Shown here in pieces: positions 11,926-39,652 of a DNA stretch of 64,000 nucleotides. Source of the DNA: Heterodontus francisci. Its lineage: Eukaryota. The notes under the pieces are model-generated. The model was not told the origin of the DNA. It saw only the letters and a program-made list of their open reading frames with translations, and ran no database searches. Position 1 is the stretch's first letter; every line of letters starts with the position of its first letter. The DNA lies in NCBI RefSeq assembly GCF_036365525.1, contig NC_090387.1:76507300-76571299 (forward strand), in the 5' to 3' direction. The position numbers and the translations under genes are program-made.

Positions 11926-12063
11926 TTAACTTCTCTCTTTCTTTATCACGTTTACTTCAGCATACACTGCGCTCTTGTCTTGTTTAGGTTTTGATGTTTT
12001 CTTGGAATCAGCAAGCTGCAGAGCCGCGTAAGTCAGCTGGTTCTCACCGCTTCTTTGTTTAGT
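11926..12063 (-). CDS. Gene B exon 8 (terminal): tyrosine module 3 with canonical ITIM (TKQRSGENQLTYAALQLADSKKTSKPKQDKSAVYAEVNVIKKERS*)
   Basis: Acceptor acttttacag|, 138 nt ending in TAA. LTYAAL fits I/V/L/SxYxxL/V and AVYAEV is ITIM-like. Candidate ATTAAA at 11852-11857. Total CDS 1143 nt = 380 aa. Confidence 0.88.
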   Translation of the reverse strand, partial: TKQRSGENQLTYAALQLADSKKTSKPKQDKSAVYAEVNVIKKERS

Positions 12064-12497
12064 CTGTAAAAGTAATATTTCGTATCACCCGTTAATCTGT
12101 TGCTCACTCATTGCTTGAGGTAATTTAGGTTTGAAAAAGACTGTAGCGAAATTTCTTCTCATCAATTACCAACTTCAGGTTGTAACCGGATTTTGTTTTG
12201 GTTTGTTTCTCCAGTTTCTCCCCTCTCTGCAAACGATTCACGTTGCGTTCCAATTCCACACCCTCCCCTAAATCTTACTGGTATTCCGCTTTAACCTTCA
12301 TATAAAATCAGTTCTGCTGAAAGGTCACAGACCTGAAACGTTAACTTTGTTTCTCTCTCCATAGATGCTGCCTAACCTACTGAGTACTTCCAGCACTTTC
12401 TGGGTTTTTTTCAGATTTCCAGCATCCGCAGTATTCTGCTTCTATAAAATTAGGTCTCCTGCTCATGCAGCCCATTCAAGGGAGCAGATTAATACTT

Positions 12498-12747
12498 CAA
12501 AGAACAAAGAACAAAGAACAGTACAGCACAAGAACAGGCCATTCGGCCCTCCAAGCCTGCGATGATCTTGATGCCTGCCTAAACTAAAACCTTCTGCACT
12601 TCCGGGGCCCATATCCCTCTATTCCCTTCCTATTCATGTATTTGTCTAGATGTCTCTTAAACGTCGCTATCGTATCTGCTCCCATGGCAGCAAGTTCCAG
12701 GCACTCACCACCCTCTGTGTAAAAAAGCTTGCCTCGCACATCCCCTC
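12498..12747 (-). mobile_element. CR1 3' fragment in the last intron of gene B
   Basis: Near-identical to 5360-5613. Confidence 0.8.
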
Positions 12748-12988
12748 AATTAAAATATAAAAATGAATTTCATACTGGTCTCTTAAGGGTATTTGGAATT
12801 ATGATATTGTAAAGCACTGTTTTTGAGGCCCTATTGTTTGAGCCTCGAAGGTCAAATATGATGAACCTTGTCTGAGATCAGCTGACACAACGCAGTGGTA
12901 GATGAAACCTGGGATCTTTGCATTTCCTGCAGCCCGGTGTCGTAACACTTAACATTGCTGATATATCAATGAATGATCTGAGCTGTAC

Positions 12989-13081
12989 CTGAGCATACAC
13001 CGTACGCTGTTCCTTCTGTCGGTGTTTCGCATTGTTCCTGGTCCTGGTTTCGACAGTGGTGTAAGGAAATTCTTGTTCCGT
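12989..13081 (-). CDS. Gene B exon 7: tyrosine module 2 (TEQEFPYTTVETRTRNNAKHRQKEQRTVYAQ)
   Basis: Acceptor tattttacag|, donor CAG|gtacag, 93 nt, phase 0-0. Same two-Tyr layout as exons 6 and 8. Confidence 0.8.
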
Positions 13082-13428
13082 CTGTAAAATAGATATTTGC
13101 CAGTCTTACCAGGTGAGTTTCTTATTTTGTAATTTGTAGTCGTTATTACAGTCAAACTCGAAAATGAAGTGGAGCTAATTTTGATTGACTGTCGTGTAAA
13201 ACAAGTGGATAGAATCCGCAACCCGTTTTACATTTCTCATGATTTCTATTTCCAACCAAGTCAGCGGGAGAGATGCCGACTCGCCAGCACTCGTTATCTA
13301 CTGTCCCATAAAGTCAACACTACCTCGGTAAATGCTGTATAGGTTGTTAGAGTTGACTCTGTTATCACAGAGTGATGATTTTATGTAGAAATGGTTTGGA
13401 TATCATTCGCGCCAATCGCTCGCCCTAC

Positions 13429-13539
13429 CTGGGGATAGACGGTGTGCTCTATCTCATGTCTACGTTTGGGGGGTCCTTTGTCATCTCTCAAGTTTAGAGT
13501 AGCGTAGGCGGTAAGTTGTTCACTTGGTGCTTGTCTAAC
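13429..13539 (-). CDS. Gene B exon 6: tyrosine module 1 (VRQAPSEQLTAYATLNLRDDKGPPKRRHEIEHTVYPQ)
   Basis: Acceptor tatttttacag|, donor CAG|gtaggg, 111 nt, phase 0-0. Contains TAYATL and TVYPQ. Confidence 0.85.
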
Positions 13540-14299
13540 CTGTAAAAATAAGATATGGAATACTGATAGTTAGAGTCTAATACAGCAGCCAGCTACCATC
13601 AATTGGAACTGAGTCTGAAAGTGTAAATATGGAGACAGTAACCGATAAAATTAGGGCTTAATTGCATTCTGCCCACTCACAATCATTTTATTCAATATCT
13701 CTCCCATAGGGTGAGGAATAATGTTCTAAATATGAAATCCAGTGCACTCAAATCTTTTTAATCCTCAGTCAGCCCATCTTATTGGAAGACTTTCCAGGCA
13801 GAGGCTGAGATTGTCCTCGTTCCACTTCCAGCCACATCTATCCAGAGCTGGAAATCAGCCGCTGAGACATTCAGCCCCTCCCCGCAACTGCCTAACCCAG
13901 GGTTTCAGGGTGCAGACCAATTAGGTGTTGGTAGCAATGTCCCAGCTAACACACCAGCGGTGGGGACGGCACCTGGGACCCTGGAATCTAAAAGCAAAAT
14001 ACTGCGGTTGCTGGAAATGTGAAATAAAACAGAAAATGCTGGAAATACTCAGCAGGCCTGGCAGCATCTGAAGAGAGAGAAGCAGAGTTAACTTTTCAGG
14101 TCTGTGACCTCTCATGGAAGGTCACAGGTCTGAAACGTTCCCTCTGTAGCTCTCACCTTCCTAATCTATCTGGTTGTGCAGGACAACGTCTCAATTAAGC
14201 AACTGGGCATCTCCGATTTTTAAAATAATTTGAATTACGAAAGAGAAATTTGTCAGATGCATATGTTACAGTAAATACAAATATTTATCTTGGCCTTAA

Positions 14300-14897
14300 A
14301 ATCAAGACATGTAGTACAAAAACAAGAAATTTATGCAAAACCTTTCTAAATCACTGGTCAGGCCTCAACTGAAACATTGTGTTCAATTCTGGGCACCACA
14401 CTGTGGGAAAGATGCCAAGGCCTTCGAGAGGGTGAAAAGGAGATTTACTGAAACGGTATCAGGAATGAACGACTTCAGTTATGTTGGGTAGACTAGAGAA
14501 TCTACGATTGCCCTCCTTATAACAGAGAGCGTGAAGGGGATATTTAATGAAGGTGTTCAAAATTATGAGAGGTTTTGAGAGAATAAATAAGGAGAAACTG
14601 ATTTCACTGGTCGTTGTGTCGGTAGCCAGGGACAGAGATTTAAAATAATTGGCAAAATAATCAGGGAAGATGAGGATATTTTTAATGCAGCCTGCTGTTG
14701 TGATCTGGAATGCACTGCCTGAAAGGGTGGTGGAAGCAGATTCAATAGTAACTTTCAAAAAGGATATATACTTGAAATCAAAAATAATGTGGGGCTATTT
14801 ATAAAGAGTCGGTGAGTGGGGCTAATTGGATAGTTATTTCAAAGAGCCAGCAGAGGCAGCATGGCCTCCTTCCTTGCTGTAGGATTCTATGATTCTA
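14300..14897 (+). mobile_element. Degenerate CR1 3' fragment
   Basis: Remnants of the RPQL..CVQFW and WNALP coding regions, with a gattctatgattcta tail. Confidence 0.7.
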
Positions 14898-14988
14898 TAA
14901 AATTTTATAAATATCTTCTAGACTGAATGTAAAAATTCTTGTTATTCCCCCGCCTACTTTTGGAACATGAAGAACATTGTCACCCTAC

Positions 14989-15032
14989 CTGCTCTTCAGC
15001 CTGACCCGCTTCCGCAGAGTCTTTCTTGCTGC
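14989..15032 (-). CDS. Gene B exon 5: cytoplasmic linker (GSKKDSAEAGQAEEQ)
   Basis: Acceptor ctctttccctcag|, donor CAG|gtaggg, 44 nt, phase 1->0. Bridges the TM exon to the phase-0 tyrosine exons. Confidence 0.82.
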
Positions 15033-15647
15033 CTGAGGGAAAGAGAAGTCCACATTGAATAGCTTAATCAGTATATAAGCAAAACAAGTTCATGTTTTTG
15101 ATGCTAAACACAGATGCTGTGTAAAGTAAGGAGACTTGAAGGTACAGATCGCTCTGAAGATGCTCAGCAGTACCAGCCATTACAGTGCAGCATGCTGGGA
15201 ATTCCCTTCTCATACCCTACAGTGTCGCTGCATCCAATGGTGTGGACCTCGTCTTTGTGCGATAGTGAAAAACAGGGTTGTCCATCCTTTCCGCATGATG
15301 GGGGGGTGGGGGGGGGGGGGTTGCTGGGGGTGGCAGGGGCGGTGGCACAATACAATTTTGTCTTATATAGGGGGCTGGTGAGACAATTTTGGAAAGATAA
15401 AGGCATTAAAAATACATCTTACTATTAATCAAAATAGCAACAAAGGTGCATTGTTGTGAGGAAGCTTTAAATATTCAACTACCAAACACAAAAAGCTCTG
15501 TGCTATCAACTTCATTCTTTAAAGATGCAGTAAGGTGCTCTTTATTCTTCAACAATGAATGAGGATTCACCTGCCCTTTTTGTATTGTAAAATTACAACT
15601 GGGCCTTTGAAAATAAAAGTATTCGGCAGAATAAGAAATATTCTTAC

Positions 15648-15752
15648 CATCTGATGCCTTTAATTTGAGTCTGGTCAAAATTATTATTAATAGTAAAATT
15701 GCCAGTATGCCCCCCGCACATCCAAAAATCAGCAGAAATGTATTATCAGTAC
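15648..15752 (-). CDS. Gene B exon 4: uncharged transmembrane segment
   Basis: Acceptor cctgcag|, donor G|gtaag, 105 nt, phase 1-1. (G)TDNTFLLIFGCAGGILAILLLIIILTRLKLKASD: hydrophobic span followed by a basic stop-transfer. Confidence 0.92.
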
Positions 15753-16753
15753 CTGCAGGATCAACAGATATTTGAAATAAGAAACTGTAGAAGACAGCGA
15801 GATATATACACAGAGTATCGTGGGTCAGGCAATGGAGGACGAGTTGCAAAGGTGTCTCTTGGGATAACGGCCTCTACCGTCAGTGGGGCTGGACCCCTTT
15901 TTTATTATAATGTGCACCAAACAATGACGATTGTAATCCAGTAATGGAATTTATGGAGAAAATAAATCCTATTCCATAAAGGCACAGGAAGCTTCTCTCT
16001 GCACGTGAGGGTTGTTTATTAAGAGTAAAGGGAGTTACACTTTTTTACCTAGCAGTGCGACACCAGACTGATCCGCAACGGCTGCAAAGGTGGCAAAGTC
16101 TTCCACTCTTCAGCGCTGACATTCCTCAGCAGTGTTACTGCTGTTACTTTTAGTAGGTAACAAGCAACTTGCATTTATGCAGCGTCTTTAACACAGTAAA
16201 ACGTCAAAAGGCATTTCACAAAGAATCACCAAACAGAATTTTAAACCGAGCCACATAAAGGGATATTAGGAAAGATGGAGGTAGACTTCAAGGAGCGTCT
16301 TAAAGGAGAGGGACATAGAGAGCCGGAGTGGTCGGGAATTTTAACTTTTAGGATGTAGACAACTGAAGGCACGATGCGCAGAGAATAGATGAACATAATG
16401 ATATTTCCATATATCCAATTTAAATTCACGGGATGTAAAGTGACTCTGAGAGAACCGATCCATTTTATGTGTAGTTTCATTTTATTTGGCAAGAATTTGA
16501 CGAGGAATAATCTTTCAAGTTTTGAACAGTTGTCCATCAACCTCCTGTTTCAGATCGCTTCAGGGAAATACTTTCCTTCCTTCACCTACTTGAATATTTT
16601 ATTTCGTTCCCATAAGTGTGGCATTGAGAGTAAATACAGTCCACATTCACTCCGTATCCTCGTGTTTGAACAGTGTTCCAGCTACATGTCTAATCAGTAA
16701 ATACAGATTGAAGTAGTCACCACGCTCCCCGCTGGATATGTTTTCAAACGTAC

Positions 16754-17047
16754 CTCGATTGACGGTGTAGCTGACGCTAGCAGGTACCAGAAGAGAGATA
16801 TGAGATGCCAGACAGGTGTAAACAACTTTCTTCGGGGCAGGTTGTGCTTCTTCCAAAAAACTGGAAACTTCATAAAGTTCTTCCGTGCTCTTGTTTTTCA
16901 CAGTTTCTATTCCGCTCAGAATTTCGACACCATCCCTTAACCAGGAGATTTCTAAATGCTCTGGATAAAAGGCAACCGTTTTACACTCGAGTTTCAGAGA
17001 AGTCGCTGAAGTTTCAACAGCAACGATTTTCAGGGGGGTCGGGGGAA
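16754..17047 (-). CDS. Gene B exon 3: C1-set Ig domain
   Basis: Acceptor ttctctgttatag|, donor G|gtacg, 294 nt, phase 1-1. (V)PPTPLKIVAVETSATSLKLECKTVAFYPEHLEISWLRDG...LYEVSSFL...YTCLASHISL...; C1 motifs LxC, FYP, W and YxCxxxH. Confidence 0.93.
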
Positions 17048-17176
17048 CTATAACAGAGAAAAAAAGTTTTTTTTTAGTTTAAAGGAACACATTCTCATTT
17101 TCTACCCTCCTTTATGCTATTACACCCCTACGGTTACAATGGTTATCGGTGCTGTCGTTCTTTAAGCTTTATGCTT

Positions 17177-17432
17177 GCAGCACAGTGGCGCCATGGTTAG
17201 CACCACAGCCTCAGCGACCCGGGTTCAATTCCGGGTCCTGCCTGTGTGACGTTTGCAAGTTCTCCCTGTGGCCGCGTGGGTTTTCGCCAGGTGCTCCGGT
17301 TTCCTCCCACAGCCAAAAACTTGCAGGTTGATAGATAAATTGGCTCTAGTATGGGAAGGTGGAGATGGGATTAATGTAAGATTAGTATTGATGGTGTGCC
17401 GAAGGGCCTGTTTCACTGCTGTATCTCTAAAT
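17177..17432 (+). mobile_element. tRNA-derived V-SINE (HE1-like)
   Basis: tRNA-like head (gggttcaattcc B box), V-domain core ctccggtttcctcccacagccaaa and a CR1-like tail. Other copies at 21765-22095 (-) and 46580-46810 (+). Confidence 0.75.
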
Positions 17433-19130: not shown

Positions 19131-19433
19131 CGTACACAGTAAGCTGGGAACCACTTCCATCTCCAATAGATTCTTGATGTTTTACTTTACAGTAATACAT
19201 TCCGGAGTCTGCAACACTCGCATTCAGAACATCAAATGAACTACTTCCCTTTTTTACATTAAATCGCTTTCTGCTGTCTGGTTTCAGAAACGATCCCTCG
19301 CCGCGTTTCCACCAATAAACATCTGGAATATCTTGAAATAGGGGAAATGTACAGAACATGGAAGCATTCGCACCTCTGGCAACCTTCAAGAATTTAGGAA
19401 ACTGTTCCACTTTGTTCGAAGTTACTTCAGCGG
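19131..19433 (-). CDS. Gene B exon 2: V-set Ig domain with germline-joined J-like G strand
   Basis: Acceptor ttttctaatag|, donor G|gtaag, 303 nt, phase 1-1. AEVTSNKVEQFPKFLKVARGANASMFCTFPLFQDIPDVYWWKRGEGSFLKPDSRKRFNVKKGSSSFDVLNASVADSGMYYCKVKHQESIGDGSGSQLTVY. Has the B-strand Cys, C-strand Trp, DSGxYYC and GxGSxLxV. Confidence 0.95.
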
Positions 19434-19622
19434 CTATTAGAAAATAAACAGTTTCATACATCAGATAAAGAAAATAACAGAAATAAAACTCAAGAACCAT
19501 TAAAAACACCAACAAGCGAATTGGAGAAACACATCTAATTTTGCAATTCATAACAATTGTACAATCTTCTAAAATATGATTGAAGTTATTCTGAAAGGGC
19601 AGCATATACTAACTAAAGGTAC

Positions 19623-19677
19623 CTGGCCAAACCATGCCCAAAAGAGCCATGTACTGAACTGAAGCTCTCACCGACAT
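19623..19677 (-). CDS. Gene B exon 1: signal peptide (MSVRASVQYMALLGMVWP)
   Basis: ATG at 19677, 18 codons + 1 nt, donor CCAG|gtacct. Phase 1 matches the V exon about 190 nt downstream. Confidence 0.85.
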
Positions 19678-21620: not shown

Positions 21621-21764
21621 TAACCCCAGATCTTTACTTGCATTGAAATCTCCTTTCTGTTTTCAATCCGGAAAATGTGAGTCATTTTCCTCATAGTTCC
21701 ATCTTTAGGTAGGGTTGGAATGATGGCAGGTCTCTATAGTGAATATAGAAAGCGGTGTCAAAGA

Positions 21765-22359: not shown

Positions 22360-23120
22360 GAACACGAACATACATACAAGCATTTGAATTAGGAGCAGGA
22401 GCAGGCCATTCAGCCCCTCAAGCCTGCTCTGCCATTTGATAAGATCATAGCTGATCTGATTCTGGCCTGAACTCTACTTTCTTGTCTACTCACTATACCC
22501 TTTGATTCCCTTGTCAATCAAGAATCTATCTAACTTAGCCTTAAAAATATTCAATGACCCTGCATTGGGGAAGAGAATTCCACAGGCTAATGACCCTCGG
22601 AGAGAAGAAAATTCATATCTCCCTCTTAAATGGAAGACCCCCTATTTTTAAACTGTGTCCCCTCGTTCCAATGTCTCCCACAAGGGGAATCATCCTCTCA
22701 GCATCCACCCTGTCAAGTCCTCTCAGGATCTTATATGTTTCAATAAGATCACCTCTCATTCTTCTAAACTCTAATGTATACAGGCTCGACCTGTCCAACC
22801 TTTCCTCATAAGATAACCACTTCATGCCTGGAATCAGTCGAATGAACCTTCTCTGAACTGCCTCTAATGCAATTATATCCCTTCTTAAATAAGGAGACCA
22901 AAACTTTACACAGTACTCCAGATGTGGTCTCACCAACACCCTGTATAACTGTAGCAAAACCTCCCTACTTTTATACTCAATTCCCACTGCAATAAATGAG
23001 AACATTCTATTTACTTTCCTAATCACTTGCTGCATCTGCATCCTAACAATTTGCGATTCATGTGCCCGGACAGCTTCTGTACCACAGAGTTCTTCCATCG
23101 CTCGCCATTTAAAAATATAC
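22360..23120 (-). mobile_element. CR1 3' fragment
   Basis: ORF 22613-23098 contains [15 protein letters not shown]...RGDLIETYKIL. Confidence 0.85.
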
Positions 23121-24099
23121 TGCTGTTATTCCTGTAGAGATTTACCATGAAGAACTCCGATGGCCATTGCTGGAGCAGGGGCGAAGCTCCACAACACCAG
23201 CCTGAGTGAGTATCGCAGTTGTTTGCGATGTTTCTCGTGATTGCTACTGAAATTCTGAAGGGAAGAACAAAGCTGCATGGTATTGTCTATTCGGAAATGG
23301 GTAGTGGGTTACTAAACAGAGAAAAGAACAAATATAGGCCAGAGATCAAGAATATCTCATGCAACAGAGAATTGGATTAATGAAAAAAATCCTGAATGTT
23401 GGAAACATGAATTTAAATCTAAAGTATTGGAAGTACATTAATGACCTCCCAGCATCTGTAAAAAAAAAAGTCGAGTCACAGCAGGGTTGGCAACTGCAGT
23501 TTGATGCATTCCTGGAGATTCGATCTTGTGATGTTGCTCATGTGATGTTTAATCACATAGGAACAAGAGTCAGCTATGTAGCTGTTCCAGCATGTTCTGC
23601 CATTCAGTGAGATCATGTCTGATCTGTAACCTAACACCTTATACCTGACGTTTGATCACGTGACACTGGCCCACTGTTTGTAGATGTTATTGCATTTACG
23701 TTAGTTGAGTTTCTTACTACCACCAAGCCCTGAATAAAATATTTGTTTTTTTTATTTTATAGTGAGATGGATATTGTAATTCATAAATCAAAGAAAGCAC
23801 TCACAAGAATAGAAAGATTTAAGAGTCAAGAATTTTAAAATAAAAACTGCTCTTTGTGATGTTTCTACTGTGTCAACCGCAATAAAAAACATCAAGTAAA
23901 TATTGTTAATTCAACAATAATATCATTAATATAAGTAACGTCTCACTAAAGTTCTCATACAATTTTATGGCGTTTTACACACATAGCAAGTTAGAACAGC
24001 AATAAATAAAACAAAATCTAATTTAATTCACTAAGTCCCACACCCCACTGCTGAGACCCAGCTTCTGGAGTCAGAGGCTCAGTTCTCAGTTCAACAACA

Positions 24100-25570: not shown

Positions 25571-28339
25571 TTTTCTTCAAATGATGCCTTTTCACCTACC
25601 AAATGCGGTGGGTATTTTTCAATGATGTTGATATGCAACACACATGCCGCCATCTTAACTATAGCTGCCAATTATGAAAGGTTGGGCAATTTGCTGACTG
25701 TGAAGGATTAGATCGAACCGATCTATAAGAAGCACCACAAATACTGAATTATTTTTAGGTGAGAGAAATGATTGGGGGTTTGTTTTTAAATCCACCGAAG
25801 TTACTCATTTTAACACAATCTGAGACGGACAATTTAAAATGAAGAAATACGCAATTAACCAACAGGATATGCAAATGGTCGCAACAATCATAAAATAAAA
25901 TGTTGCCTTTAATTATTTTGATAGTCTAAGGATGATATTGCAGCAATAAAGCCACTATGAGCAGTTTTATTCCAAAGTACTGATGAGGGCCTCCATTCCT
26001 GGAAGTGTTTTTTTCTAACCAAGAGATAATAAACCATGGGTCTCTCTATCTCTTCAGGTGGGCATAAAAGATCCCATGCCAAATTGAGTTCACCTGCTGC
26101 TCTGACCAACATTGTTCCCTCAACCGGCATTACTACTTGCAGATTATCTGGTCTTTTATCTCATTGCTATTTGTGTGACCTCTCAGTTTGCTAATTGCCT
26201 GCCTTTTTTTTCTCTACATTACAACAGTGACAACACTTCAAATGGAAAACATTTGGAACATCTCGATGTGAAAAGCGCTGTACATATACTGTTTATACTG
26301 CTGTCAGTGTGAGCTTGCTGCGTGCAAATTTTCTTATCGTTTTGCCTATTTCAAAAGCAATGAGTATGAGGCGCTTTGAGACATTTCATAAGCGAGGTAA
26401 TGAGGTGCTACAAATGAACACAAGTCGTGCTTTCTCTCATTATTGTGCCATATCGGAAACCCTGCAAACATGATGGGAATTTGGAATTCACCAAGCATAA
26501 CTGGAAGTTGGAGAATTAAATATTATACATATTGTCAGGATGGGTGAGTCACAGGGTTAGTGCTACCGGCTTAAGCTGCAAAATTGGTTTTCACGGAAAA
26601 TTATTTCCACTTCACAATGTAATTCCAGAGCCAGGACCCCACAGGAATCCAGAACAATGGATGGGAGTTCCACTTCTAGGTCTTGAGTTCCAGTCGATTT
26701 GACATCACTGCCCTTCACACAGCATCTCCAGGACTGTGGCAGCTAGCGACGGTACATGAGGACCTTGGTTGTGGCCGGTTGTTTGCCTTCTTTTTACAGA
26801 AAGTAACTGTCTAAGTGAAAAGAAGAGATCCTTACCTTATAGCAAAATCCCACATCATATTGCTTGTGCTCTGCCCAACATTCATTTCTCAACTAACTTC
26901 ACGAAAACAAGATATTTGGCCATTATAATGTTGATGTTTGCGGAACGCTGCTGTGCGCAATATGGCTGCCACGTTTCCTACATGACAACACGTCAAACGT
27001 ATTTAATTGGCTGGAAAGCGCTTTGGGAGTTCAAACGTCGTGAAATGTGCTATATCAATACAAGTTCTTTTTTTCTTTCTCTAATTTTACTCTGGCTATT
27101 TTGTTTTATAACAAGGCCATCTATCCATTCAAATATATAATCTAATATACTGGATGACATTACGTATAATGAGATGTTTCTGAACAATAACGCTATTCTC
27201 TATTACAGCTGAAAAGGAGCGTCAATTTTTCCAAATAGTCGTTCCCTTGATGTAACCTATTTCATGTTGAGAGTGTGGTATACGGAGAGAGATTTCTCCG
27301 GACCTTATCGATTTTATAGTGATTATCGCCAAAAATCATAAATGGTTCACTCTACGACTTTCCCACAGAAAGAGCTCCATATCTCTGAAGTTAATTACAT
27401 TTAACATTGACATTTAGATGATATCGTTATAATTGCTTAACATTTCAATTGTCAGAATGAGCATGCCGGCGTACCGCTAAACTCAGACATTGCAGAAGAA
27501 CTGCAGAAATGTTTGGTTGCGAGATTTCAAATACATTTCTTAAATTATACTTCTTTTGAACATCGAAACAGGTAACGCAAACACTGTGCAACTTGCATGG
27601 CCTGAGAGGAGCGCAACCACTAACCACAAAGTGTTTCCATGATGCCACTAGCAGAATCGCCTTGCAGTTCTGTTCTCCCAGTGATTGCAATTTCCCATTA
27701 GCTCAAACTACGAGTGCACTGTGCGGTAAATGATTAGCTAAATGAAGAAATCAGCTTCAAGATTAGATCTATTTTCATAGAAAAGTTGCAAAATTTCACA
27801 CATGAGCAACTGCAATCGCGTATTACAAACAGAAATCTAAAATAGATGTCTCTGTGGCGAGAACCCTTCATCAGAATGGAAGATGTTACAGATAGGAAGC
27901 ATTTAAAAAGGAGCAGAACAAATGCAAAGGGGACGCAAACCCACACATAAAGACACCCACACAGACACACAAACACTTACCATACAAGTCGCATTTGTAT
28001 ATCACCTTCAACGCGGTAAGCCTTCAAAAAGCGCTTCATAGGGAACATTATTAAACAAATTTTAACACTAAACAACACAAGGTTCCGGTGGCCAACAGCT
28101 TTTAAAGGAGGAAGGAGAAGCAGAGATATTTCGGGTTGGAATTCCAGAGCTTAGGGCCTCGGCAGCTGAAGACACGCGGAGCGAAGAAAATTGGGGATGG
28201 ACAAGAAGCCAGAATGCAAGGAGGCCATGGAGGGATTTGAAAACAAAGATGAGAATTTTAAACTAAAGGCGTTGCAGGACCCGGAGGCAGTGTAGGTCAA
28301 CGAGCATGAGGAATGAATGTTCCTTGGCGTGAGTTATAC

Positions 28340-28660
28340 GTACAGACATACATACACACATACATATACACAGAAGCACACACAGACACACATATACACA
28401 TGCACACACATTCACATATACACATAGATGCACACATACACATACACACTCATACATTCACCCATTAAAAAAAGACTTGTAATTATATAGCACCTTTAAT
28501 GATCCAGGAATGCCAAAGCACTTAACAGCCAAGGAAGTGTAGTCACTGTTGTAATTCCGGAATACACATACACAATCGCACCCACACCCATATACACCCA
28601 CATAGCCCAAAATACATGCACACACATACATACACATATATGCACACACACACACACAGA
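28340..28660. repeat. Degenerate (CA)n microsatellite tracts
   Basis: CA/TA-rich simple repeat, interrupted at about 28460-28560. Confidence 0.85.
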
Positions 28661-28899
28661 CAGGAGAATGGTGAAGTGTTTAAATGGAAAACGGGATCAT
28701 TTTCCTTCCTCGCTCACACAATATATTTATTTTCCCTTCACTCTTCCCTTCGTTCCATTCCCATGATATCTGCAACTCCCTGTCTGAATATGTCCAATCA
28801 GATTTCCACCCCACCACAGCTCCGAAACAGCCCTAATCAAATTTGCAAATGACATTCTGTGATGGCGACCTCATATCTGCTTCATTATAAAGACTGCCT

Positions 28900-30215: not shown

Positions 30216-30219
30216 ACAT

Positions 30220-31204
30220 TGTTATGATCCTGCAGTTTTTTTCGGGGGGTGGGGTGGTGCAGGTGGCAGAATGTGGTGTGCCTTTAAGGCTGGAAAGGGA
30301 GAAGTACTGCTGTCAGACAGCAAACTCTAAAAACTGAGTCAAAGAATGCATTCTCGTTGCCCCGGGATACAGCCATTTGGAGACTGTGAGTCAAAGAGTG
30401 ATTTCTTGTTGCCTGGGATACAGCCATTCAGGAGCAGAGATGGAGAGATACATTGTTACAATTTAATTTTGAACTGGTTATAGTGGAAACAGACTGTTCT
30501 AACTCAGAGAAACAGACAGACAGCTGTGTGTTAGCACCTGAAAGGAGATCTTTCAGACCATTTAAACTGAAGGAAGAGAATTTAGTCTGTTTATCTATTA
30601 TTCTGTCTCAAAATTCTAAAACGTCAAGCCAAAACAGAGATTTCTGATAAATTAAACTGAAGGGAAGTTACACTGTGATAATCTTTTATCCCTCAAAAAT
30701 TCTAAAGCCAAATTGATTCATTAGAAAGTGTTTGCTAGTTGTTAATTGTTGAAATTCATCACTGGAGAAGGAAAGCATCAATTTTACCTTCTGAATTGGA
30801 CGAATGACTGTTCTACTGTTGAAGAACCTTTTTTTCCCCATCGGATGGCTGTGAGGACTTCAAGCAATCTTGGACTGTTCCACACCTGGCAGGAGCATAA
30901 ATATGCAAGGACTTTATTTTTTTTTCTATTTTATGTGTTGTTTATATCTTAGGAGTGTATAAGAATTTACTTTTTCTAATTAAACAATTAATTTGTTGAT
31001 TTAAAGACACCTGGTTTGGTTTGCCTCATTCGGGGTTAATAGATGGTATAATTTGGCTGGGTCTTTCTTTAATTTGGAATGTTTAAAATGATATGTTAGG
31101 CAATCTGTAGAGGGATGGGATTGAATTAACAGTGCAGTTCTCCCAACACAATCAAAATTGTATATTTTGATTGGGAGCTTTGACTGGAGCAGTCAGTAAT
31201 AACA
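30220..31204. mobile_element. Solo LTR
   Basis: Termini TGTTAT...ATAACA form an inverted repeat. Flanks acat/atat are an imperfect 4-bp TSD. Second copy at 1-491. Confidence 0.7.
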
Positions 31205-31344
31205 ATATCGGTTGTTATTTTATGCCTTCCTCTTTATTTTCCCAGTTCTGATGAAGGGTTATGACCAAACTATTAACTTATCTGTTCTCTGGGGAGATGT
31301 GTATCGACCCACTGAGTATTTCCAACATGTTCTGTTTTGCATTA

Positions 31345-32200
31345 CATAAAATTACATGGGGACCATTCGCCCAAACTGCTCTATGCTGCTATTTATGGCC
31401 TCATGAGTGTCCTCCCACCCCTTTTCATCTATCCCTATCAGCATATCCTTCGACTTCTTTTTCCTTCATATGCACATCAAGCTGCCCCTTTAAATACATC
31501 TCTGCCATTCACCTTAGCTACGCAATTTTCTACCCATTCGGTAAAAGTTTCTCCTGAAATCCCTCTTGGATATATTTAAGACTATCTTATATTTCTGCCC
31601 TCTAGTTTTGGATTCCCTCACAAGTTGAAACATTTTCTCTCGGTCTACCGTATCAAACCCGTTCATAACTTCAAAGACCTCGATCAGGTTCCCCCTCAGC
31701 TTTCCCTTTTCTAGAGTAAAGAACCTCAGACTGTTCAGCCTTTCCTGAGAAGTTTATCTTCTCAGTTCTGGCATTAACCTAGTGGATATTTTTGCACCTT
31801 TTCCAGTGCCTGTAAATAACTTCCATAATATGGAAACTAGAAATTTGCACAGTGCTCCAAGTGTGGTCTAACCAAGATTCAATACAAGTTTAACATAACT
31901 TTGCTACTTTTTAATTCTATTCCTTTAGAAATTAACCCCAATACTTGGCTTACTTGTTATGGCCTTATAAATCTGCATTACCTGCTTTTAGTGATTCATG
32001 GATTTGTACTCCTAAATCGCTTTCCCCTGTACCCCATTTAGACCCTTATTATCCAAGCAGTATGTAGCTCCTTACTCTACCTACCAAAATGCACCACCTC
32101 ACACTTACCTATATTGAAATTCAATTGTTAATTGTATTTTGTCGCTTTCTTCCTCAGTATTAATCATAGACCCCATTTTGGTGTCACCACAGACTTTGGT
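31345..32200 (-). mobile_element. Old CR1 fragment
   Basis: Reverse-strand CR1 ORF2 end text (cagtgctccaagtgtggtctaacc; caaaatgcaccacctcacac). Confidence 0.7.
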
Positions 32201-34929
32201 TGTGCTACCGATTTCTGAGCTTTGGCTTCAGATTTCCAGCAGTTTATGTTTTTTTTTTCTTTTTTTGCGTGGTCATAATGCTGAGGCGGTGCGAGGCCTG
32301 GCTGGCAAAGGCGTGCAGTGTTTCTGTGAAGCCTGAAGAGGCACGCTTGCTCTTTTCAGTAGTTGAACTCTACAACAAGATGGCGTCAATTTAAAATTAA
32401 AGCCAGGCCATTCAGGAGTAAAACCAGGAAACACCTTTTCACACAAACACCATGAAATGTGGAACCCTCTTCCCAATAGGCTGTGAATGCTTGGACAATC
32501 GGAGCTTTCAAGACTGTGATGGTAGATTTTTGTTAGTTAACGGTATCAAAGGATACAGAAGGTCAATGGAATTGAGGTGCAGATCAGTCATGACCTAATT
32601 GAATGACGGATCAGAGCTCAAAGGCTGAATGGTCTATTCCTGTTCTCATGACATGGCTATAGAAGCTATTTAAAACCCTTCCACTCCAGTAATGCCAATT
32701 TTCCAAAGTAAAAATTCACTTTTGTTTTTCCGGATTTCACGGCTTTCTCACAGATGTTACATGGGAGATCGGCAGACCACTGCTCGAATTATCGGCTGTA
32801 CATCTGTAGAACTGATTAACAGTGCTGCAGATTAAGCTGGGGTTTGAATTTTGTTGTGGGATGCTGAGCGTGAACCGCAGCGGTAAATCTGCGAATCCCT
32901 AGAGAAGCCGGCTAAATGCCATCAATTAGCCGGCTTCTCCAGGGTTCTCGTCAATGTTTTGCCAAGGTTATTACGGGAAATCGGTAGAAACCTCCGCAGA
33001 AAAGCCACCTAGTTAATTTAACGTCATTGCTATCCAATGGCGGCATTGGTCGCATTGCATAAACCAAAATGTAAACTCCTGGCATCCGTCTTTGTCATCA
33101 GCTATGTCTACAAATGCATTGGACTTCATATCCAGTTAGAAAGTGCATTTTTAGATTTCAAATACCTTTAGATTTATTGAATTATTAAAGTGTTTTGGGC
33201 AACATCATCAGACAATTGGTGAGAAACCATTGCATTCATTTTGATGAGAACCGTGCATTGAGCACAGTCTGAATCATAGAGCGACTGTCTGCCGATGTCC
33301 TCAGTGTGAAGGTTGCATTCTGGAATAGGAAGGTGCGTGCGTGAGGGGTCAGGGTTGCTGCTCCACATCCCAGCATTTAATATTTATCTTCGGGCACTGG
33401 TATAATTGCACAGATCAGGAGGATCAGTAAGATAAGTTCAGCACTACTTGGAAAAGGAGGGTCATTAAAGAAGTCCACAGAGGAGGTTTCAAGAAAATCA
33501 GTGATCCGAGCCCCAAAGAAAGAGCAATTGATGTGGTCCTTAGAAGAGATCCACTTATCAGGTAACGGAGGAAGTCACGAATCAGATCTCCCCATAAAGG
33601 GGGGATTAAGCTCCTAAAGGAGATTCATTCATCAACGCTTTTGAGAAGGGTCATTGACCAGGTATCGAGAGGACAGTGCCCAGAAAATATGTTACTTCGA
33701 TCACTCAAACTAGTACCCGAAGGCAGGGAATGCTAACAAAAAAATAAATTAAAGGAAGCATGGGGTAATGGTGTAAGGTGGGGGTTATTGAATTGGCCGT
33801 CCGTTAGACAACAGCCCGATTTTCCTTTACTTCAATAGAAAGGAAAATCAGGCGCGGCTAATTCAGGATCAACCAGTTCACAGCATCGCCCAAGGTTAGA
33901 ATTACCTCCATGGACTCTAAAAACCGCTGAATCTTAACTAGGAACAATTTCATTCCATAATCTTACCGCTGATACCAAGGATTTAATTTAAATAATCACT
34001 TTGCTTCACATACATTGCACTGAAAATCTTTTATTGAATAGATTCCATGATGATACAAACAGAATTAACCGATTCCAGTAAAAAGCTGGCACGCGACATG
34101 ATGGGTTGGATTTTCCACATGCTACCCGGATGGTTTACATAAAAACAGCTGATTCGTAATACCAGTTTAACCTTGAGCGGCAAATTGAAAAACTCTCTCA
34201 AATGCTCCATTTTGAAGTAAATACCCTCAATATTATTAATTTAACCACAACTGGACTCAAGTTTTCTTGCATCTCCAATCTTCATTAGAGATTTATGTTG
34301 TTTTGAACAGGCCAAAGCTTATTCATAGTAAACGCATTGAAACGTTTTCCTTAGAGGAGAAAATGGAGAAAAAGTAGATGTGCCATCGTGAAAAACCATT
34401 GGTAACAAGGTGGCAGCCCGTGTTACAGCTCACCGAATACTTATTGCCATCTACTAAAATGGGGAGAGATATAGATCAGATTGCCAACCCGCTGCCACCG
34501 TTTTACAAGATCTATCCCGCTATTCCTTGTTTTTATTAATTCAATCACAACTGATATCCAGGTTCAATGCCATAATTTTTAAATGTTTATTTCTATGATT
34601 TTAAGCAGAAGTTCGGCTCCCAAAGTTTGCAAAAAATGTCCATGTTGCGATAAAATCAACATTGTAATAATTGTAATCCAGCCCGTGGAGGCTGACAGTA
34701 CAACTATTTTATCTAGATATCCAATGCTACAGGAAACATAAGGCTAGATATTGACTTTGTACGACAGGGTAAAATGGATGATAGTGAGTTAGCAGCCCAT
34801 TTTACATCTCCCCCCATTTTTATTCCCATTGATCTATGCTCCTATTGAAATAAAACACAGCAGAGATGTAAAAAGTGATGCCAACACACTGTCACCCATT
34901 TTACACTATCTCAGAAGGTAAAAATCTAC

Positions 34930-35039
34930 CCCATCGTACGTTGGGGCTTGCAAGTCATAACCCGCAGAGAAATCACTTTCCTTGGAGACAAATCTTCCGC
35001 ACAGTATGTTATATTCCAGTCAGTTGTTTCCTGGATGAC
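34930..35039 (-). pseudogene. Gene A vestigial tyrosine-module exon (frameshifted homologue of gene B exon 6)
   Basis: Acceptor tttttatcag|GTC ATC CAG reads VIQETTDWNITY. It is 110 nt to a gtagat donor versus 111 nt in gene B. Restoring one base places Tyr at codons 12 and 35, the same as in gene B exon 6. Confidence 0.6.
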
Positions 35040-35134
35040 CTGATAAAAAAAGGGCAACATTCAATACTGACGGTTGATTGAATTATTGATTACGTTGATG
35101 AATTACTACTAGCCCCCATCCCCACCAGTCTTAC

Positions 35135-35175
35135 CCGTCCTCTTCCAAATGTACCGATAAGCTTCCCTTCAATAT
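35135..35175 (-). pseudogene. Gene A vestigial cytoplasmic linker exon
   Basis: cttcccatag|41 nt|gtaag. Size and phase (1->0) resemble gene B exon 5, but it is out of phase with the gene A TM donor (phase 2), which gives AGA TAT TGA. Confidence 0.5.
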
Positions 35176-35631
35176 CTATGGGAAGTCACGTGGTCGTGAA
35201 AGGCGCTGTACAAATACAATTTATGTACAAAATTGTTTTGAAACAATAATTGGCCCGATAACCAAGCGGTTGGATTTTTACTCCCGTTTAATAACTGGGG
35301 AAATTACCTCTGGTTGCTATTTCTAGTGAAGTCTTAAATGGCTTCTTTTAAAACACTTCCACAATTTTCCTAGAACATGAAAATCCTCCAAATTTCTTCG
35401 CAACGTTGCGAACCCATAATGATCAGAGTCCTTTGTGAGGAGATATAAATGACAGAACTTTGGATCAGCTATTGCCCCGAAATAATATCCGATTACTTCC
35501 AATGTGTAAATTGTGAACCTTCAAAGAACATTCATTTTCATCTACTATCGGTTAACGCGACGTTATTTGCTCATTTACAATAACGATTTTATCTGCAAAG
35601 CGGCGGTGCACTCTGGTAATAAACGTATTTC

Positions 35632-35750
35632 TCACCTTTCACAGTACCTCCGCTTAAAATAATTCCCAACGATGACTATCAGCACCATTATTATCAATAT
35701 ACCCACTAACTGCCGAGACACCAAAAAGAGAGTAGCGACGTTAACAGCAC
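35632..35750 (-). CDS. Gene A exon 4: Arg-containing TM and short tail (GAVNVATLFLVSRQLVGILIIMVLIVIVGNYFKRRYCER*), non-canonical acceptor
   Basis: The exon start GT GCT GTT AAC aligns with gene B GT ACT GAT AAT, but the intron ends tttgtcg instead of AG. Read-through stops at TGA 35634-35632, and an AG|gtgag donor is present at 35636. Confidence 0.65.
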
Positions 35751-36056
35751 CGACAAACAGAGTAACGGAGATATAAGACCGACGGGCATTAATGTCAATT
35801 AAACCAGCAAGAAAACCCAGGGAAACACGGGATCAGAACTAATCGTGTAAAGTCCATTTAATATAGATACAGATTGCTTAAAAAAATATTCAAATAAAAT
35901 GCCAACAAATGAAACAATTCACAATCTGACCAATAAATCATCAATGTAATACACGCATGCAGTAACATCAAATGCTATCACGTGTTCACAAACGTGTGCT
36001 CGTATTAAGAAAAACGATAAAGGAGCGAACGCTTCTGTAAAATGAATTGATCATAC

Positions 36057-36356
36057 CTTCCAAGTTGTAACTGACATTGGCTGGAGTCTCAAGGGAGACA
36101 TGAGATACTTGGCAGCTGTATGTAGCTCCACTGTAGGATAGCGTCGTATCTTTTAAAGTGCTGGAAATCTCATACAGTCCCACTCTGGTTTGCTGTTTGG
36201 TAGTATTGATCCCGGTTACAATTTTTGCATTGTTCTTATACCAAGTCACATTGAGATCTTCAGGGTAAAATTTAGCTGTTTTACACAGGAGAATTGGAGA
36301 AGTGGACGGACGGAATTCAGACTCAACTAAGTCGATCCTCAGAGGAGTGGGCGGAA
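36057..36356 (-). CDS. Gene A exon 3: C1-set Ig domain
   Basis: Acceptor cttttcctcccaag|, donor G|gtatga, 300 nt, phase 1-1. (V)PPTPLRIDLVESEFRPSTSPILLCKTAKFYPEDLNVTWYKNNAKIVTGINTTKQQTRVGLYEISSTLKDTTLSYSGATYSCQVSHVSLETPANVSYNLE. Confidence 0.93.
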
Positions 36357-36710
36357 CTTGGGAGGAAAAGAAAATTATTTTAAGTTTGAAACATGAATTA
36401 GTATTATATTTCTGTAGTCTATAATTTCGAACACGAGTTCAGGACAGGTCCCTTTACCATCGTATTTCATTGAAACATTTTTAATTTCTTCCTTTCCACA
36501 TATTATGAAGCTAGAAATTACATGGAATCCTTAACGAAGAAAGGAAAGTGTAGTATTTGGTAGAATCCTGGAGCCATGGAGCGTAGAAGGAGGCCACTGA
36601 TCCAACTTGCCTTTGTTAGATCTTTGAAAGAACTATGCAATTAGTCCCCCTCCCCTGCTCTTTCTCCATAGCCCTGCAAACATTTCCTTTCCAAGTACCT
36701 ATCCAGATTC

Positions 36711-38182
36711 CGACAAGTTTCCATGAGATTGGGAAATAGCGAATGCAACTCCTTTATTCAATAAGGGAGGGAGACAGAAAGCAGGAAACTACAGGCCAGT
36801 TAGCTTAGTATCCCTCTTAGGGAAAATGTTAGAAGCTATTATTAAAGACGTTTTAGCAGTGCACTTAGAAAAATTCAATGAAATCAGGCAGAGTCAACAT
36901 GGTTTTCTGAATAGGAAATCATGTTTAACCAATTTATTGGAGTTGTTTGAAGAAGTAACATGTGCTGTGCATAAAGGAGAACCGGTGGATGTATTGTACT
37001 TGGATTTCCAGAAGGCATTTGATAAGGTACCACATCAAAGATTATTGCAGAAAATGAAAGTTCATGGTGTAGGGGGTAACATATTGGCATGGATAGAACA
37101 TTAGCTGGCTAACAGGAAACAGAGTGGGCATAAATGGGTCATTTTCTGGTTGGCAAGATGGAAAGAGTGGTGTGCCACAGAGATCAGTGCTGGGGCCTGA
37201 AATTTTGCAATTTACATAAAAGACTTGGGGATGAAGGGACAAAAGGTATAGTTGCTAAATTTGTTGATGACACCAAGATAGGTAGGAAAGTAAGTTGTGA
37301 AGCCGACATCAGGAGGCTACAAATGGATATAGTTAGGTTAAGTGAGTGGACAAAGATCTGGCAAATAGTGTATAATGTGGGAAAATGCGAAATTGCCCAT
37401 TTTGGCAGGAAGAATAAAAAAATAAGCATATTATCTAAATGGTGAGAGATTGCAGAGCTCTGAGATGCAGAGGGATCTAAGTGCCCAAGTGCATGAATTG
37501 CAAAAGGTTAGCATGCAGGTTCAACAAGTCATTAGGAAAGCAAATAGAAAGTTATTGTTTATTGCGAGCAAATTGAATACAAACATAGGAGGTTATGCTT
37601 CACGTATACAGGGCATTGGTGAGACCACATCTAGAGTACTGTGTGCAGTATAGATCTCCTTATTTAAGGAATGATTTAAATGTGTTGGAAGCAGTTCGGA
37701 GAAGGTTTAATTGGACTAATACCTGGAATGGGTGGGTTGTCTCATGAGGAAAGGTTGGACAGGCTAGGCTTGTATCCACTGGAGTTTAGAAGAGTAAGAG
37801 GCGACTTGATTGAAACATATAGCATGCTGAGGGGTTTTGACAGGATCGGTGTGGAAAGGATGTTTCCCCTTGAGGAAGAATCCAGAACTAGGAGTCACTG
37901 TTTATAAAATTAAGGGCTCAACATTTAAGACAAAGATGAGGAGAATTTCTTTCTCTGAGGGTCATGAACCCTTCCTCAAAAGGCAGTGGAAGCAGCGTCT
38001 TTAAATATTTTTAAGGCAGAGGTAGATAGGTTCTTGTTAAGTATGTGGGTGAAATGTTATCGAGGGTGTGGAGTCGAGGTTACAATCAGATCAGCCATGA
38101 TCTTTTTGAATGGCGGAGCAGGCTCGAGGGGCCGAGTGGCCTACTCCTGCTCCTAATTCGTATGTTAGTTTGTATGTTCGTA
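36711..38182 (+). mobile_element. CR1 in gene A intron 2 (same insertion as 684-2146)
   Basis: ORFs 36826-37907 contain YLDFQKAFDKVPH and KFVDDTK. Junctions match those in copy C. Confidence 0.88.
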
Positions 38183-39125
38183 CAATTCCCCTTGAAAATT
38201 ACTATTGAAACTGCTTGATTCCAGTTAGTGAGTTCCAGATCACAACAGCCTGCCGTGTAAAATAATTTCCCCTCCCCTCCCCTCCTATTCTTTTGCCAAT
38301 TATCTTAAATCGGTGCCTCTGGTTACTAAATCGTCGTTATTTGGTTATAGAGTCATGTGATTTTACAACGCAGGAATCCATTTGGCTCAGTGTGCCCGTG
38401 TCATCTCTGAAAGAACAATCCAGTTAGTCTCTTTGACATATTTGTGCTCCCTTCAGCCCTTCCCGTCAGAACAGTTAAGCTTCTTATTTCCAGTGGCCGT
38501 TTTGTGCAGGGACATGGTAAATATATTCGCAAAGGTTTCTTGTGGTTTTGTTACTAGTGAAATCATAAAGTTGTTCCAAAACACTTACCATCTCGAAAAC
38601 AAAGTTTCATTCTAATTCTAACAAAGTTGGAGTGACCAGTCTAACGTTTCTCCACAGTAGAAATTCCTTGTTTGCTATTTCCAGTCAAATTGTAGGAGTT
38701 TTCTTTTAAAGAAATATTCCACCCAGAAACCAGCCCATAATTAGCAAACATTGGGGCAGGTTTTGACTTTGTCCGACAATGGAAACCGGGCGAGAATCGT
38801 CGGCAGTCCCATTGAAATTGGAAGCACCAGCTTACGATCAATTGTTCTACATTATCTACACATTGACACTGAAGGGGGAAGGTTTCCTCCCTTGCACTAT
38901 GTAAGGAAATTGTCCATTTAAAAAAAAACTTATGACGTTGCAGAAAATATACGCAGGAAATCTTCCCGTAAGTCAACAATCTCAGCTCTCCAGTCGCTTG
39001 ATGCTGATACTGGATACAAAAACCTGGGCCGGTGTCCCATTCCCGCACGCTTCTCTACCTCTTTGGTATTTTGCTAAATACCTATTGCACAACTGACACT
39101 TGTAACATCAGCACCAACAACTTAC

Positions 39126-39440
39126 CGGCCACAAGGAGCTCTGAGCCGGTTCCATTCCCAAACATTCCTCCCCGGCAGTACACGGAGCAGTAATAGCGGC
39201 CAGAATCTTTGAAGCTTACATTCAAGAGATGGATGGCGGCTCCTCCTTTTTTCAGAAGTTTGTATTGTCTGTTGCTCGCTTCTCCGTCGTTCAAGAACTC
39301 ATCATCACCATGTCGCCACCACTGAACCTTTACATCTGATTCCTCTTGAAAGACGGGGAATGTGCAGTAGAAGGTGATGTTTGCTCCTCTGAGCGCAACT
39401 TTGATTGGAGGGATTTGGCCGACTGTGGATTCCCCAACAA
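39126..39440 (-). CDS. Gene A exon 2: V-set Ig domain with germline-joined J-like segment (FGNGTGSELLV)
   Basis: Acceptor tctgatag|, donor G|gtaag, 315 nt, open. VGESTVGQIPPIKVALRGANITFYCTFPVFQEESDVKVQWWRHGDDEFLNDGEASNRQYKLLKKGGAAIHLLNVSFKDSGRYYCSVYCRGGMFGNGTGSELLVA. Roughly 40% identical by eye to the gene B V domain. Confidence 0.94.
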
Positions 39441-39612
39441 CTATCAGACAGCCAATGGAAACATCAAAATAAATATCTAAATGTAGCGAATAATAAATAT
39501 AGAAAGAAGGTTAAAAATAACGAAATATAACAACGATAAACCGCGAATGGTGATAAATTCAACGTTCAAATAATATCACTCTCCATATTTTGTTCTTATA
39601 TTTTGGAAATAC

Positions 39613-39652
39613 CGTTGTGTGTAATCAACAGGATCAGTATACTTGGTAGCAT
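39613..39652 (-). CDS. Gene A exon 1: signal peptide (MLPSILILLITHN)
   Basis: ATG at 39652, 13 codons + 1 nt, donor G|gtattt, phase 1. TATA-like sequence about 90 nt upstream. Confidence 0.82.

Follow-up and report, generated by a model that had tools for sequence, protein, structure and literature searches.

Teleost NITRs form a large, fast-evolving multigene family in which a V domain with a J-like motif occurs both in members with an immunoreceptor tyrosine-based inhibitory motif (ITIM) and in members with a charged transmembrane (TM) segment; their second domain is I-type, and to our knowledge they are known only from bony fish. In some lower vertebrates NKp30/NCR3 and Xenopus XMIV occur as several genes, of both activating and inhibitory form. 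C1-set domains occur only in antigen receptors, major histocompatibility complex (MHC) molecules and a few associates, and genes with V and J in a single exon have been sought as relics of the gene that was split by the RAG transposon (PMC12227049, PMC2785349). UrIg consists of a VJ and three C domains and is secreted only, and UrIg2 of a VJ and nine to eleven C domains (PMC12227049). Receptors are regarded as paired when very similar extracellular regions are combined with opposite signalling (PMC3533184). The 64,000-nucleotide stretch of Heterodontus francisci (horn shark) DNA analyzed here, hereafter the window, carries at positions 11926–39652 two minus-strand genes in head-to-tail order, termed gene B and gene A, each made of a leader, a single-exon V-J and one C1-set domain. 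We consider it probable that these two genes and a nearby gene fragment are members of a multigene family of non-rearranging VJ-C1 genes, retrieved only from cartilaginous fish, in which gene B is inhibitory, gene A is secreted after loss of the splice acceptor of its TM exon, and the activating counterparts of gene B are located elsewhere. The main interest of the locus is this chondrichthyan-wide family, which includes inhibitory, secreted and putatively activating members; no paper describing it was found in a limited search of the literature.

Exon-wise searches of the window, which contains no N runs, identified the horn shark as its source. The exons were searched one by one, and RefSeq proteins served as full-length queries. 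The C1 exon of gene A matched RefSeq XP_067906048, whose gene lies on a 99.65-Mb sequence, at 100% identity. Pfam detected V-set and C1-set domains in both genes. Pairwise comparison of exons gave 40% identity for the V exons (E 2e-24) and 44% for the C1 exons (E 4e-30). True C1-set domains are recognized by three features: (F/Y)(F/Y/H)P in the BC loop, a spacing of exactly 13 residues from the B-strand Cys to the C-strand Trp, and xVxH following the F-strand Cys (Hatherley et al., PMC2785349). The C1 domains of gene A (FYP, C-13-W, CQVSH; Pfam C1-set 7.9e-14) and gene B (FYP, C-13-W, CLASH; Pfam C1-set 2.5e-08) were both assigned to the C1-set on all of these points. The V exons (39126–39476 in gene A, 19131–19433 in gene B) encode DxGxYxC and, after it, a J-like strand of the pattern G-x-G-(S/T)-x-L-x-V (gene A, GTGSELLV; gene B, GSGSQLTV), and both end straight after this strand at a phase-1 consensus donor, G/GTAAGT (the slash marks the exon boundary). 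V and J thus lie in one uninterrupted exon and are therefore germline-joined, as expected of a non-rearranging VJ-type V gene. The V domain is a short one (in gene A, 57 residues separate its two Cys), and it scores almost as high with I-set as with V-set profiles. An earlier note, made by reading the DNA alone, had proposed a chondrichthyan genome with two head-to-tail, minus-strand, non-rearranging VJ-C1 immunoglobulin-superfamily genes that share homologous leader, V and C1 exons and about 40% V identity, and the Pfam assignments and exon comparisons bear this out.

To delimit the family, the gene A protein was searched with phmmer against 1.84 billion representatives, yielding 70 representative clusters below 1e-30, mostly single V-C1 proteins of 230–450 amino acids. 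A V-C1 profile run on the retrieved proteins separated 90 sequences scoring at least 210 bits from the next best, coelacanth SIRP, at 97–99 bits. All 44 matches of the profile search were named as chondrichthyan, and every family member whose species was looked up came from a shark (Heterodontus, Heptranchias, Scyliorhinus, Carcharodon, Chiloscyllium, Hemiscyllium, Mustelus), a batoid (Amblyraja, Mobula, Hemitrygon, Hypanus, Pristis, Narcine) or a chimaera (Callorhinchus). A single C1 exon or domain is present in genes A and B and in nearly all of the ~90 family sequences. About ten family gene models lie on the same horn-shark chromosome, and the accession numbers XP_067906041 and XP_067906052, which adjoin those of genes A and B, hint at more members just outside the window. 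RefSeq names the proteins variously as SIRP-alpha-like, SIRP-beta-1-like, tapasin-related-like, NCR3LG1-like, Ig-lambda-like, TCR-beta-like and HLA-DO-beta-like; the family therefore has no curated name and, being spread over at least seven misleading RefSeq names, is invisible to name-based surveys.

Family members differ at their 3′ ends, for which four types were recognized. In the majority, the TM is uncharged and has a conserved Gly-Cys, and the tail carries motifs of the LTYAAL and TEYAxI/L types. In a second type the TM bears an Arg towards its outer end and (D/E)H at the inner one, and the tail is short (P0034, P0174, P0176, P0007, P0013, P0047, P0026); these R...DH relatives would couple to an adaptor with an acidic TM. 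A third has a PWWIY...CC-rich TM and a Lys-rich tail with no Tyr motif, and a fourth has no TM. A crude count of ITIM and immunoreceptor tyrosine-based switch motif (ITSM) patterns flagged 39 of the 90 sequences, ~34 after R...DH forms matching by chance were dropped. The proposal that inhibitory and activating forms coexist thus holds for the wider family, the activating forms being putative. The subfamily with the juxtamembrane sequence PWWIY...CC(K)CC (P0042, P0054, P0101, P0173, P0179) occurs in sharks, rays and chimaera, and its Cys cluster suggests palmitoylation.

Gene B comprises eight exons, all on the minus strand:

19623–19677, minus strand: exon 1, leader (ATG at 19677) with a phase 1 donor (GT-AG exon set equal to RefSeq P0155)
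19131–19433, minus strand: exon 2, single-exon V-J (DSGMYYC; GSGSQLTV) (Pfam V-set 3.2e-10, motifs, exon map)
16754–17047, minus strand: exon 3, C1-set domain (FYP, Cys-13-Trp, CLASH) (Pfam, C1-set features, exon map)
15648–15752, minus strand: exon 4, uncharged TM (LLIFGCAGGILAILLLIIIL) and stop-transfer residues (top-scoring peptide of the window with the family TM profile, 28.3 bits; AlphaFold2 helix 222–251)
14989–15032, minus strand: exon 5, 44-nucleotide cytoplasmic spacer leading from phase 1 to phase 0 (exon map)
13429–13539, minus strand: exon 6, tail with TAYATL and TVYPQ tyrosines (exon map, motifs, family tail profile 25.8 bits)
12989–13081, minus strand: exon 7, tail with FPYTTV and TVYAQ tyrosines (exon map, motifs, tail profile 21.0 bits)
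11926–12063, minus strand: exon 8, tail with the canonical ITIM LTYAAL, AVYAEV and the stop codon (exon map, motifs, tail profile 49.4 bits)

A search for GT-AG sites returned one eight-exon set that translates residue for residue to RefSeq XP_067906043 (380 amino acids), confirming the length that the earlier note had given, together with the neutral TM and the ITIM-bearing tail of six tyrosines. The tail is encoded by three phase-0 exons and holds, besides LTYAAL, an ITSM-like TAYATL and the motifs TVYPQ, FPYTTV, TVYAQ and AVYAEV. The sequence LTYAAL in exon 8 conforms to the ITIM pattern (S/I/V/L)xYxx(I/V/L) and, in this TM protein, is cytoplasmic. With its uncharged TM and canonical ITIM, gene B is predicted to be an inhibitory receptor, in agreement with the earlier assignment. 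Binding of a ligand by its V domain would lead to tyrosine phosphorylation by a Src kinase and to recruitment of SHP-1/2 through LTYAAL and the neighbouring motifs. An AlphaFold2 model of gene B, computed from a 33-sequence family alignment, consists of two confident beta-sandwich domains, the TM helix and a disordered tail. Foldseek searches of the PDB with this model returned Fab light chains only (E ~1e-16), which confirms the fold and does not discriminate between families. Prediction of an ectodomain homodimer gave a score of 0.00 with no verdict and is evidence neither way.

The products of gene A were read from Logan contigs of three runs of one sample, for which the tissue is unrecorded and the library type is guessed in the record; the contigs count as RNA because their joints show GT..AG ends on the minus strand. 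The following gene A features were delineated:

39613–39652, minus strand: exon 1, leader (contig joint 39476/39613, GT..AG; RefSeq P0154)
39126–39476, minus strand: exon 2, V-J (DSGRYYC; GTGSELLV) (joints 36356/39126 and 36356/39220; splice sites; translations; Pfam V-set and Ig_3)
36057–36356, minus strand: exon 3, C1-set domain (FYP, Cys-13-Trp, CQVSH) (Pfam C1-set; contigs and joints)
35632–35832, minus strand: TM-like open reading frame (ORF) ...LFLVSRQLVGILIIMVLIVIVGNYFKRRYCER followed by a stop, read as a fossil TM exon (acceptor scan; alignment with the gene B TM exon; TM profile; no contig joint)
35308–35430, minus strand: optional exon, out of frame after C1, where the protein ends ...NLEGL and stop (joints 35429/36056 and 35037/35306 with cut offsets; sites; translation)
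34100–35039, minus strand: terminal exon, ...GHPGNN and stop (35020–35022) plus 3′ untranslated region, extending past 34100 (joint 35037/36055, a 1000-nucleotide contig, end identical to RefSeq P0154)

The contigs follow two routes: leader, V and C1 are joined either to 35430–35308 and then 35039 onward, or to 35039 onward directly, and the C1-to-35430 and C1-to-35039 joints are present in up to three runs. Either route meets a stop within a few codons, since C1 ends in phase 1. The predicted products are 236 amino acids (...NLEGHPGNN), 232 amino acids (...NLEGL) and a truncated form of 104 amino acids. The 236-residue translation equals RefSeq isoform X1; isoform X2, of 224 amino acids, uses an acceptor at 39440, 36 nucleotides further in. 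Like the contigs, both RefSeq isoforms are without a TM; the 257-residue TM protein expected from the DNA alone was not recovered, and gene A transcripts are predicted to encode secreted V-C1 proteins, not an activating receptor. The 104-residue form arises from a cryptic donor at 39220 inside the V exon (AAT/GTAAGC), which removes 94 nucleotides and shifts the frame. It is about as deep as the normal donor in run X1 (13.7 vs 14.4), gives the sole V-C1 joint in run X2, and may be a case of regulated unproductive splicing or point to decay. Further family members (P0003, P0168, P0177) also have annotated isoforms without a TM, and the family may regularly produce soluble forms. In these RefSeq isoforms, of horn-shark paralogues and gene B, the 105-nucleotide TM exon is skipped in frame and the tyrosine tail is kept.

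Two further observations concern the gene A contigs. Depth over 36648–38215, in the V-C1 intron, reached ~58,000, compared with ~20 on the exons; this stretch is a LINE/CR1-type (LINE, long interspersed nuclear element) reverse-transcriptase repeat with copies at 493–2468, 22364–23121, 42634–43314 and 55588–56663, so the depth reflects genome-wide repeat transcripts, not this locus. Single-base mismatches between RNA and assembly were seen at 36142 (C>T, C1 exon, run X2) and at 34389 and 34402 (T>C and G>A, 3′ untranslated region, run X1), and probably are allelic differences or indicate that the RNA donor differs from the assembly individual.

Whether genes A and B constitute an activating/inhibitory pair, as the earlier note held, depends in part on the TM-like ORF at 35632–35832. 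Under that proposal gene A would be a 257-residue receptor whose TM Arg recruits an ITAM adaptor, for example FcR-gamma, DAP12 or CD3-zeta. The ORF does exist in the DNA between C1 and the downstream exons, encoding an Arg, ~20 hydrophobic residues, a basic stop-transfer KRR and a stop; the earlier note had described the Arg and a stop about 10 residues after the TM. Arg is found at the same TM position in P0016, P0025, P0029 and P0050, and R...DH TMs with short tails occur in other members. A family TM profile, built without genes A and B and searched against all six-frame peptides of the window, ranked the gene B TM exon first and the gene A ORF second (12.3 bits, E 0.021; next 6.5 bits), with the Arg aligned on the conserved Gly of the Gly-Cys motif. 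A profile of R...DH TMs, tried for the ORF as an activating-type exon, gave 5.8 bits at rank 4 and did not single it out, and that reading was dropped. Against the paired-receptor proposal, an acceptor scan found no in-phase AG through which C1 could be spliced to 35632–35832 so as to keep the Arg; the only in-phase AG between the C1 donor and the ORF, at 35705, falls after the Arg codon and would leave a hydrophobic stretch of 17 residues. At the homologous acceptor gene A reads TGCTG/TT where gene B reads TGCAG/GT, so that the AG has been lost. None of the spliced contigs has a joint into 35632–35832, in contrast to the joints from C1 to 35430 and 35039. The stop codon of the ORF sits in a donor-like AG/GTGAGA, opposite the gene B donor G/GTAAGA, and the apparent short cytoplasmic tail is therefore a read-through of the old donor.

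The ectodomains point the same way. At 40% (V) and 44% (C1) identity, genes A and B lack the very similar extracellular regions of paired receptors. In a maximum-likelihood tree of 87 V-C1 segments with support from the Shimodaira–Hasegawa-like approximate likelihood-ratio test (SH-aLRT), gene B falls in a 99% clade of 21 shark and batoid sequences, which includes four horn-shark paralogues 83–90% identical in V as well as the R...DH forms P0034, P0174 and P0176 (Scyliorhinus, Heptranchias). Gene A, an orphan on a long branch, lies in a different subfamily, and its best identity is 48%. Gene B, with LTYAAL and five more tyrosines, has the makings of an ITIM-bearing partner; the contigs and RefSeq models of gene A have no charged TM with a short tail behind it. 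A and B are thus not a pair, since their ectodomains have diverged and belong to different, anciently split subfamilies, and we regard it as highly improbable that they act as one. The likely activating partners of gene B, to judge from their sequences, are other genes, whose ectodomains are 64–90% identical to that of gene B and whose short tail follows an R...(D/E)H TM, for example XP_067906052 (P0177), a horn-shark protein whose V is 90% identical to that of gene B and whose last-exon peptide is the same as in the R...DH forms.

The simplest reading of the gene A TM-like ORF is that of a skipped fossil exon. The ancestor of gene A would have borne a TM and a tail, and its TM exon would have lost the splice acceptor; C1 would then have been spliced to the old tail exons in the wrong frame, with a stop within 1–6 codons, giving a secreted V-C1 protein. 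Consistent with this, a family tail profile built without gene B and its close paralogues placed the three tail exons of gene B at the top and the gene A terminal exon, read in phase 0, fourth (11.0 bits, E 0.07; next 3.9 bits), and this exon in phase 0 resembles the last ITIM exon of the family (NITYCAEDL). The product may be a soluble decoy, competitor or binder, or an opsonin-like molecule, or the gene may be on its way to decay. An alternative is that gene A is a transcribed pseudogene without protein function: its TM exon is dead, its tail exons are out of frame, the frameshifting 39220 donor is about as well represented as the normal one, the orphan branch has no close orthologue, and a truncated duplicate lies nearby. 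Yet the leader, V and C1 exons have stayed intact and keep their canonical Cys, Trp, DxGxYxC, FYP and CxVxH, splicing is canonical, a productive isoform is present, and TM-less isoforms are shared with the paralogues named above; we consider a pseudogene somewhat unlikely.

Several points weigh against the overall interpretation of a chondrichthyan family with an inhibitory gene B and a secreted gene A. Restriction to chondrichthyans describes the sequences retrieved, and the word-limited search scored 8000 candidates only. The fossil exons show weak homology (window-wide E values of 0.02 and 0.07), and BLASTP gave no alignment of the putative fossil exons of gene A with the gene B tail exons or of the TM-like ORF with P0007. 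Contigs drop rare isoforms, so that a minor or tissue-specific TM-bearing isoform of gene A could escape. The exon model of gene B rests on RefSeq, and we infer SHP recruitment, secretion and ligand binding from motifs.

Among named receptor families, SIRP is the nearest by sequence, coelacanth SIRP being the nearest outsider within the retrieved set. SIRPs and the family share a V with a J-like strand followed by true C1-set domain(s), and both have ITIM-tailed members alongside short-tailed members with a charged TM. Unlike SIRPs, the family has one C1 instead of two, and identity to coelacanth and lungfish SIRP-like proteins is ~27–30%. SIRP-beta has a Lys in mid-membrane, unlike the putative activating forms of the family with their Arg near the outer TM end and D/E-H at the inner end. 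The family could be the cartilaginous-fish orthologue of SIRP, with one C1 lost or not yet duplicated, binding CD47. Many RefSeq names ('tyrosine-protein phosphatase non-receptor type substrate 1-like' or 'SIRP-beta-1-like') would agree with this; a tail with LTYAAL-type and then TEYAxI/L-type motifs recalls ITYADL and TEYASI of SIRP-alpha; and human SIRP-alpha is the best match of the family profile among PDB sequences that are neither immunoglobulin nor UrIg (118 bits, in one stretch across V and C1), and genuine coelacanth SIRP is the nearest non-family sequence. However, IgA1 heavy chain (138 bits) and UrIg2 (134.6) outscore SIRP-alpha, and tails with ITIM and ITSM-like motifs are also seen in Siglecs, CEACAM1 and other unrelated receptor families. 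In a control search, the coelacanth protein named 'SIRP-beta-1-like' scored 181 bits for SIRP-alpha vs 122 for Ig; a bona fide SIRP thus gives a clear signal and the family does not, and SIRP membership is therefore not shown. Used as single-domain queries, the gene B V exon and the gene A C1 exon did not retrieve SIRP in the top 60. Neither the SIRP ectodomain of a V and two C1-set domains nor SIRP as the clear best solved relative was found, and orthology to SIRP appears unlikely.

The second established family that might absorb these genes is NCR3 (NKp30), in its published shark form, or the chicken PRARP homologue, in which case nothing here would be new. NKp30/NCR3, XMIV and the family all have non-rearranging VJ-type V domains. 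The NGT sequon within the J-like strand of human NKp30 resembles the NGTGS of the family. NKp30 and PRARP are cited as non-rearranging MHC-linked VJ genes (PMC10751288), and eight nurse-shark NCR3 genes exist (MT914154-61). Against this stands the architecture: NKp30/NCR3 is a single V with a stalk and no C domain, and a C1-set domain was found in both genes and throughout the family. The UrIg2 paper (PMC12227049) likewise treats NCR3 as a VJ-domain gene and enters only its V in trees, suggesting that it has no C1. The distinction is one of architecture, and on it an NCR3 or PRARP identity seems very unlikely. Of the earlier description as SIRP/NKp30-like, the SIRP part survives as an automatic RefSeq name and as the nearest outside relative; the three-domain ectodomain of SIRP and the single-V layout of NKp30 do not apply.

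Comparison with other systems gave further partial likenesses. UrIg and UrIg2 (Flajnik et al. 2023 and 2025) are elasmobranch genes that likewise do not rearrange and in which a single-exon VJ precedes C1-type domains; the family differs from them in having one C1, not three or more, in being multigene and in its ITIM, R...DH and soluble 3′ ends. Immunoglobulin light chains and T-cell receptor (TCR) chains share the two-domain unit of V-J and C1, the split leader and phase-1 exons, whereas in the family V-J is germline-joined, the V is short and the protein has its own signalling tail. NITRs resemble the family in their V with a J-like motif and their inhibitory and activating members, and differ from it in the second domain, which in the family is C1-set. 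Tapasin-related protein and B7H6 have V-like and C1-like ectodomains, and the TAPBPR C1 scored ~45 bits against the gene A C1, but the family lacks the tapasin N-terminal domain and has a J-like G-x-G strand. The tapasin-related and B7H6 names in RefSeq are artefacts of best-hit transfer, because the same family is also given Ig-lambda-like, TCR-beta-like and HLA-DO-beta-like names. Searches of the ESM Atlas returned generic V-C families (B7/butyrophilin, CD200, TAPBPR).

The family thus has the V-J and C1 layout of light chains and TCR chains, germline-joined and equipped with its own inhibitory tails or, in other members, with a TM of a kind by which other receptors recruit adaptors, and gives comparative immunologists genes for testing the signalling and pairing of receptor chains without rearrangement. 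Gene A illustrates how losing one splice acceptor can turn a membrane receptor into a secreted protein. On a more speculative and rather doubtful reading, the family would be an ancient and so far undescribed lineage of membrane-bound non-rearranging chains, each with one VJ exon, one C1 and a TM whose outer end holds a conserved Gly-Cys, sister to SIRPs and near the stock of Ig and TCR chains. If true, it would be the living family that best matches the hypothesized pre-RAG receptor chain, with inhibitory, activating and secreted forms before the split of sharks, rays and chimaeras.

The third partial copy mentioned in the earlier note exists, at a position outside the span of genes A and B and with its C1 and TM exons absent:

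20–3326, minus strand: third, truncated gene-A-like copy (blastn self-comparison 80–87% identity; tblastn 94% over 16 amino acids)

It duplicates pieces of 30746–39174, namely the V-C1 intron of gene A and sequence downstream of gene A, and of the coding exons it retains just the final 16 codons of V (3276–3326).

Besides genes A and B, no host genes are evident in the 64-kb window, in which LINE fragments only were seen. LINE-like reverse-transcriptase ORF fragments lie at 5438–6715, 22613–23098, 36826–37907, 46081–47356 and 49978–50703. Between genes B and A, a long (TG/CA)-rich microsatellite-like tract at 28260–28700 appears in the ORF lists as Cys-Val repeats.

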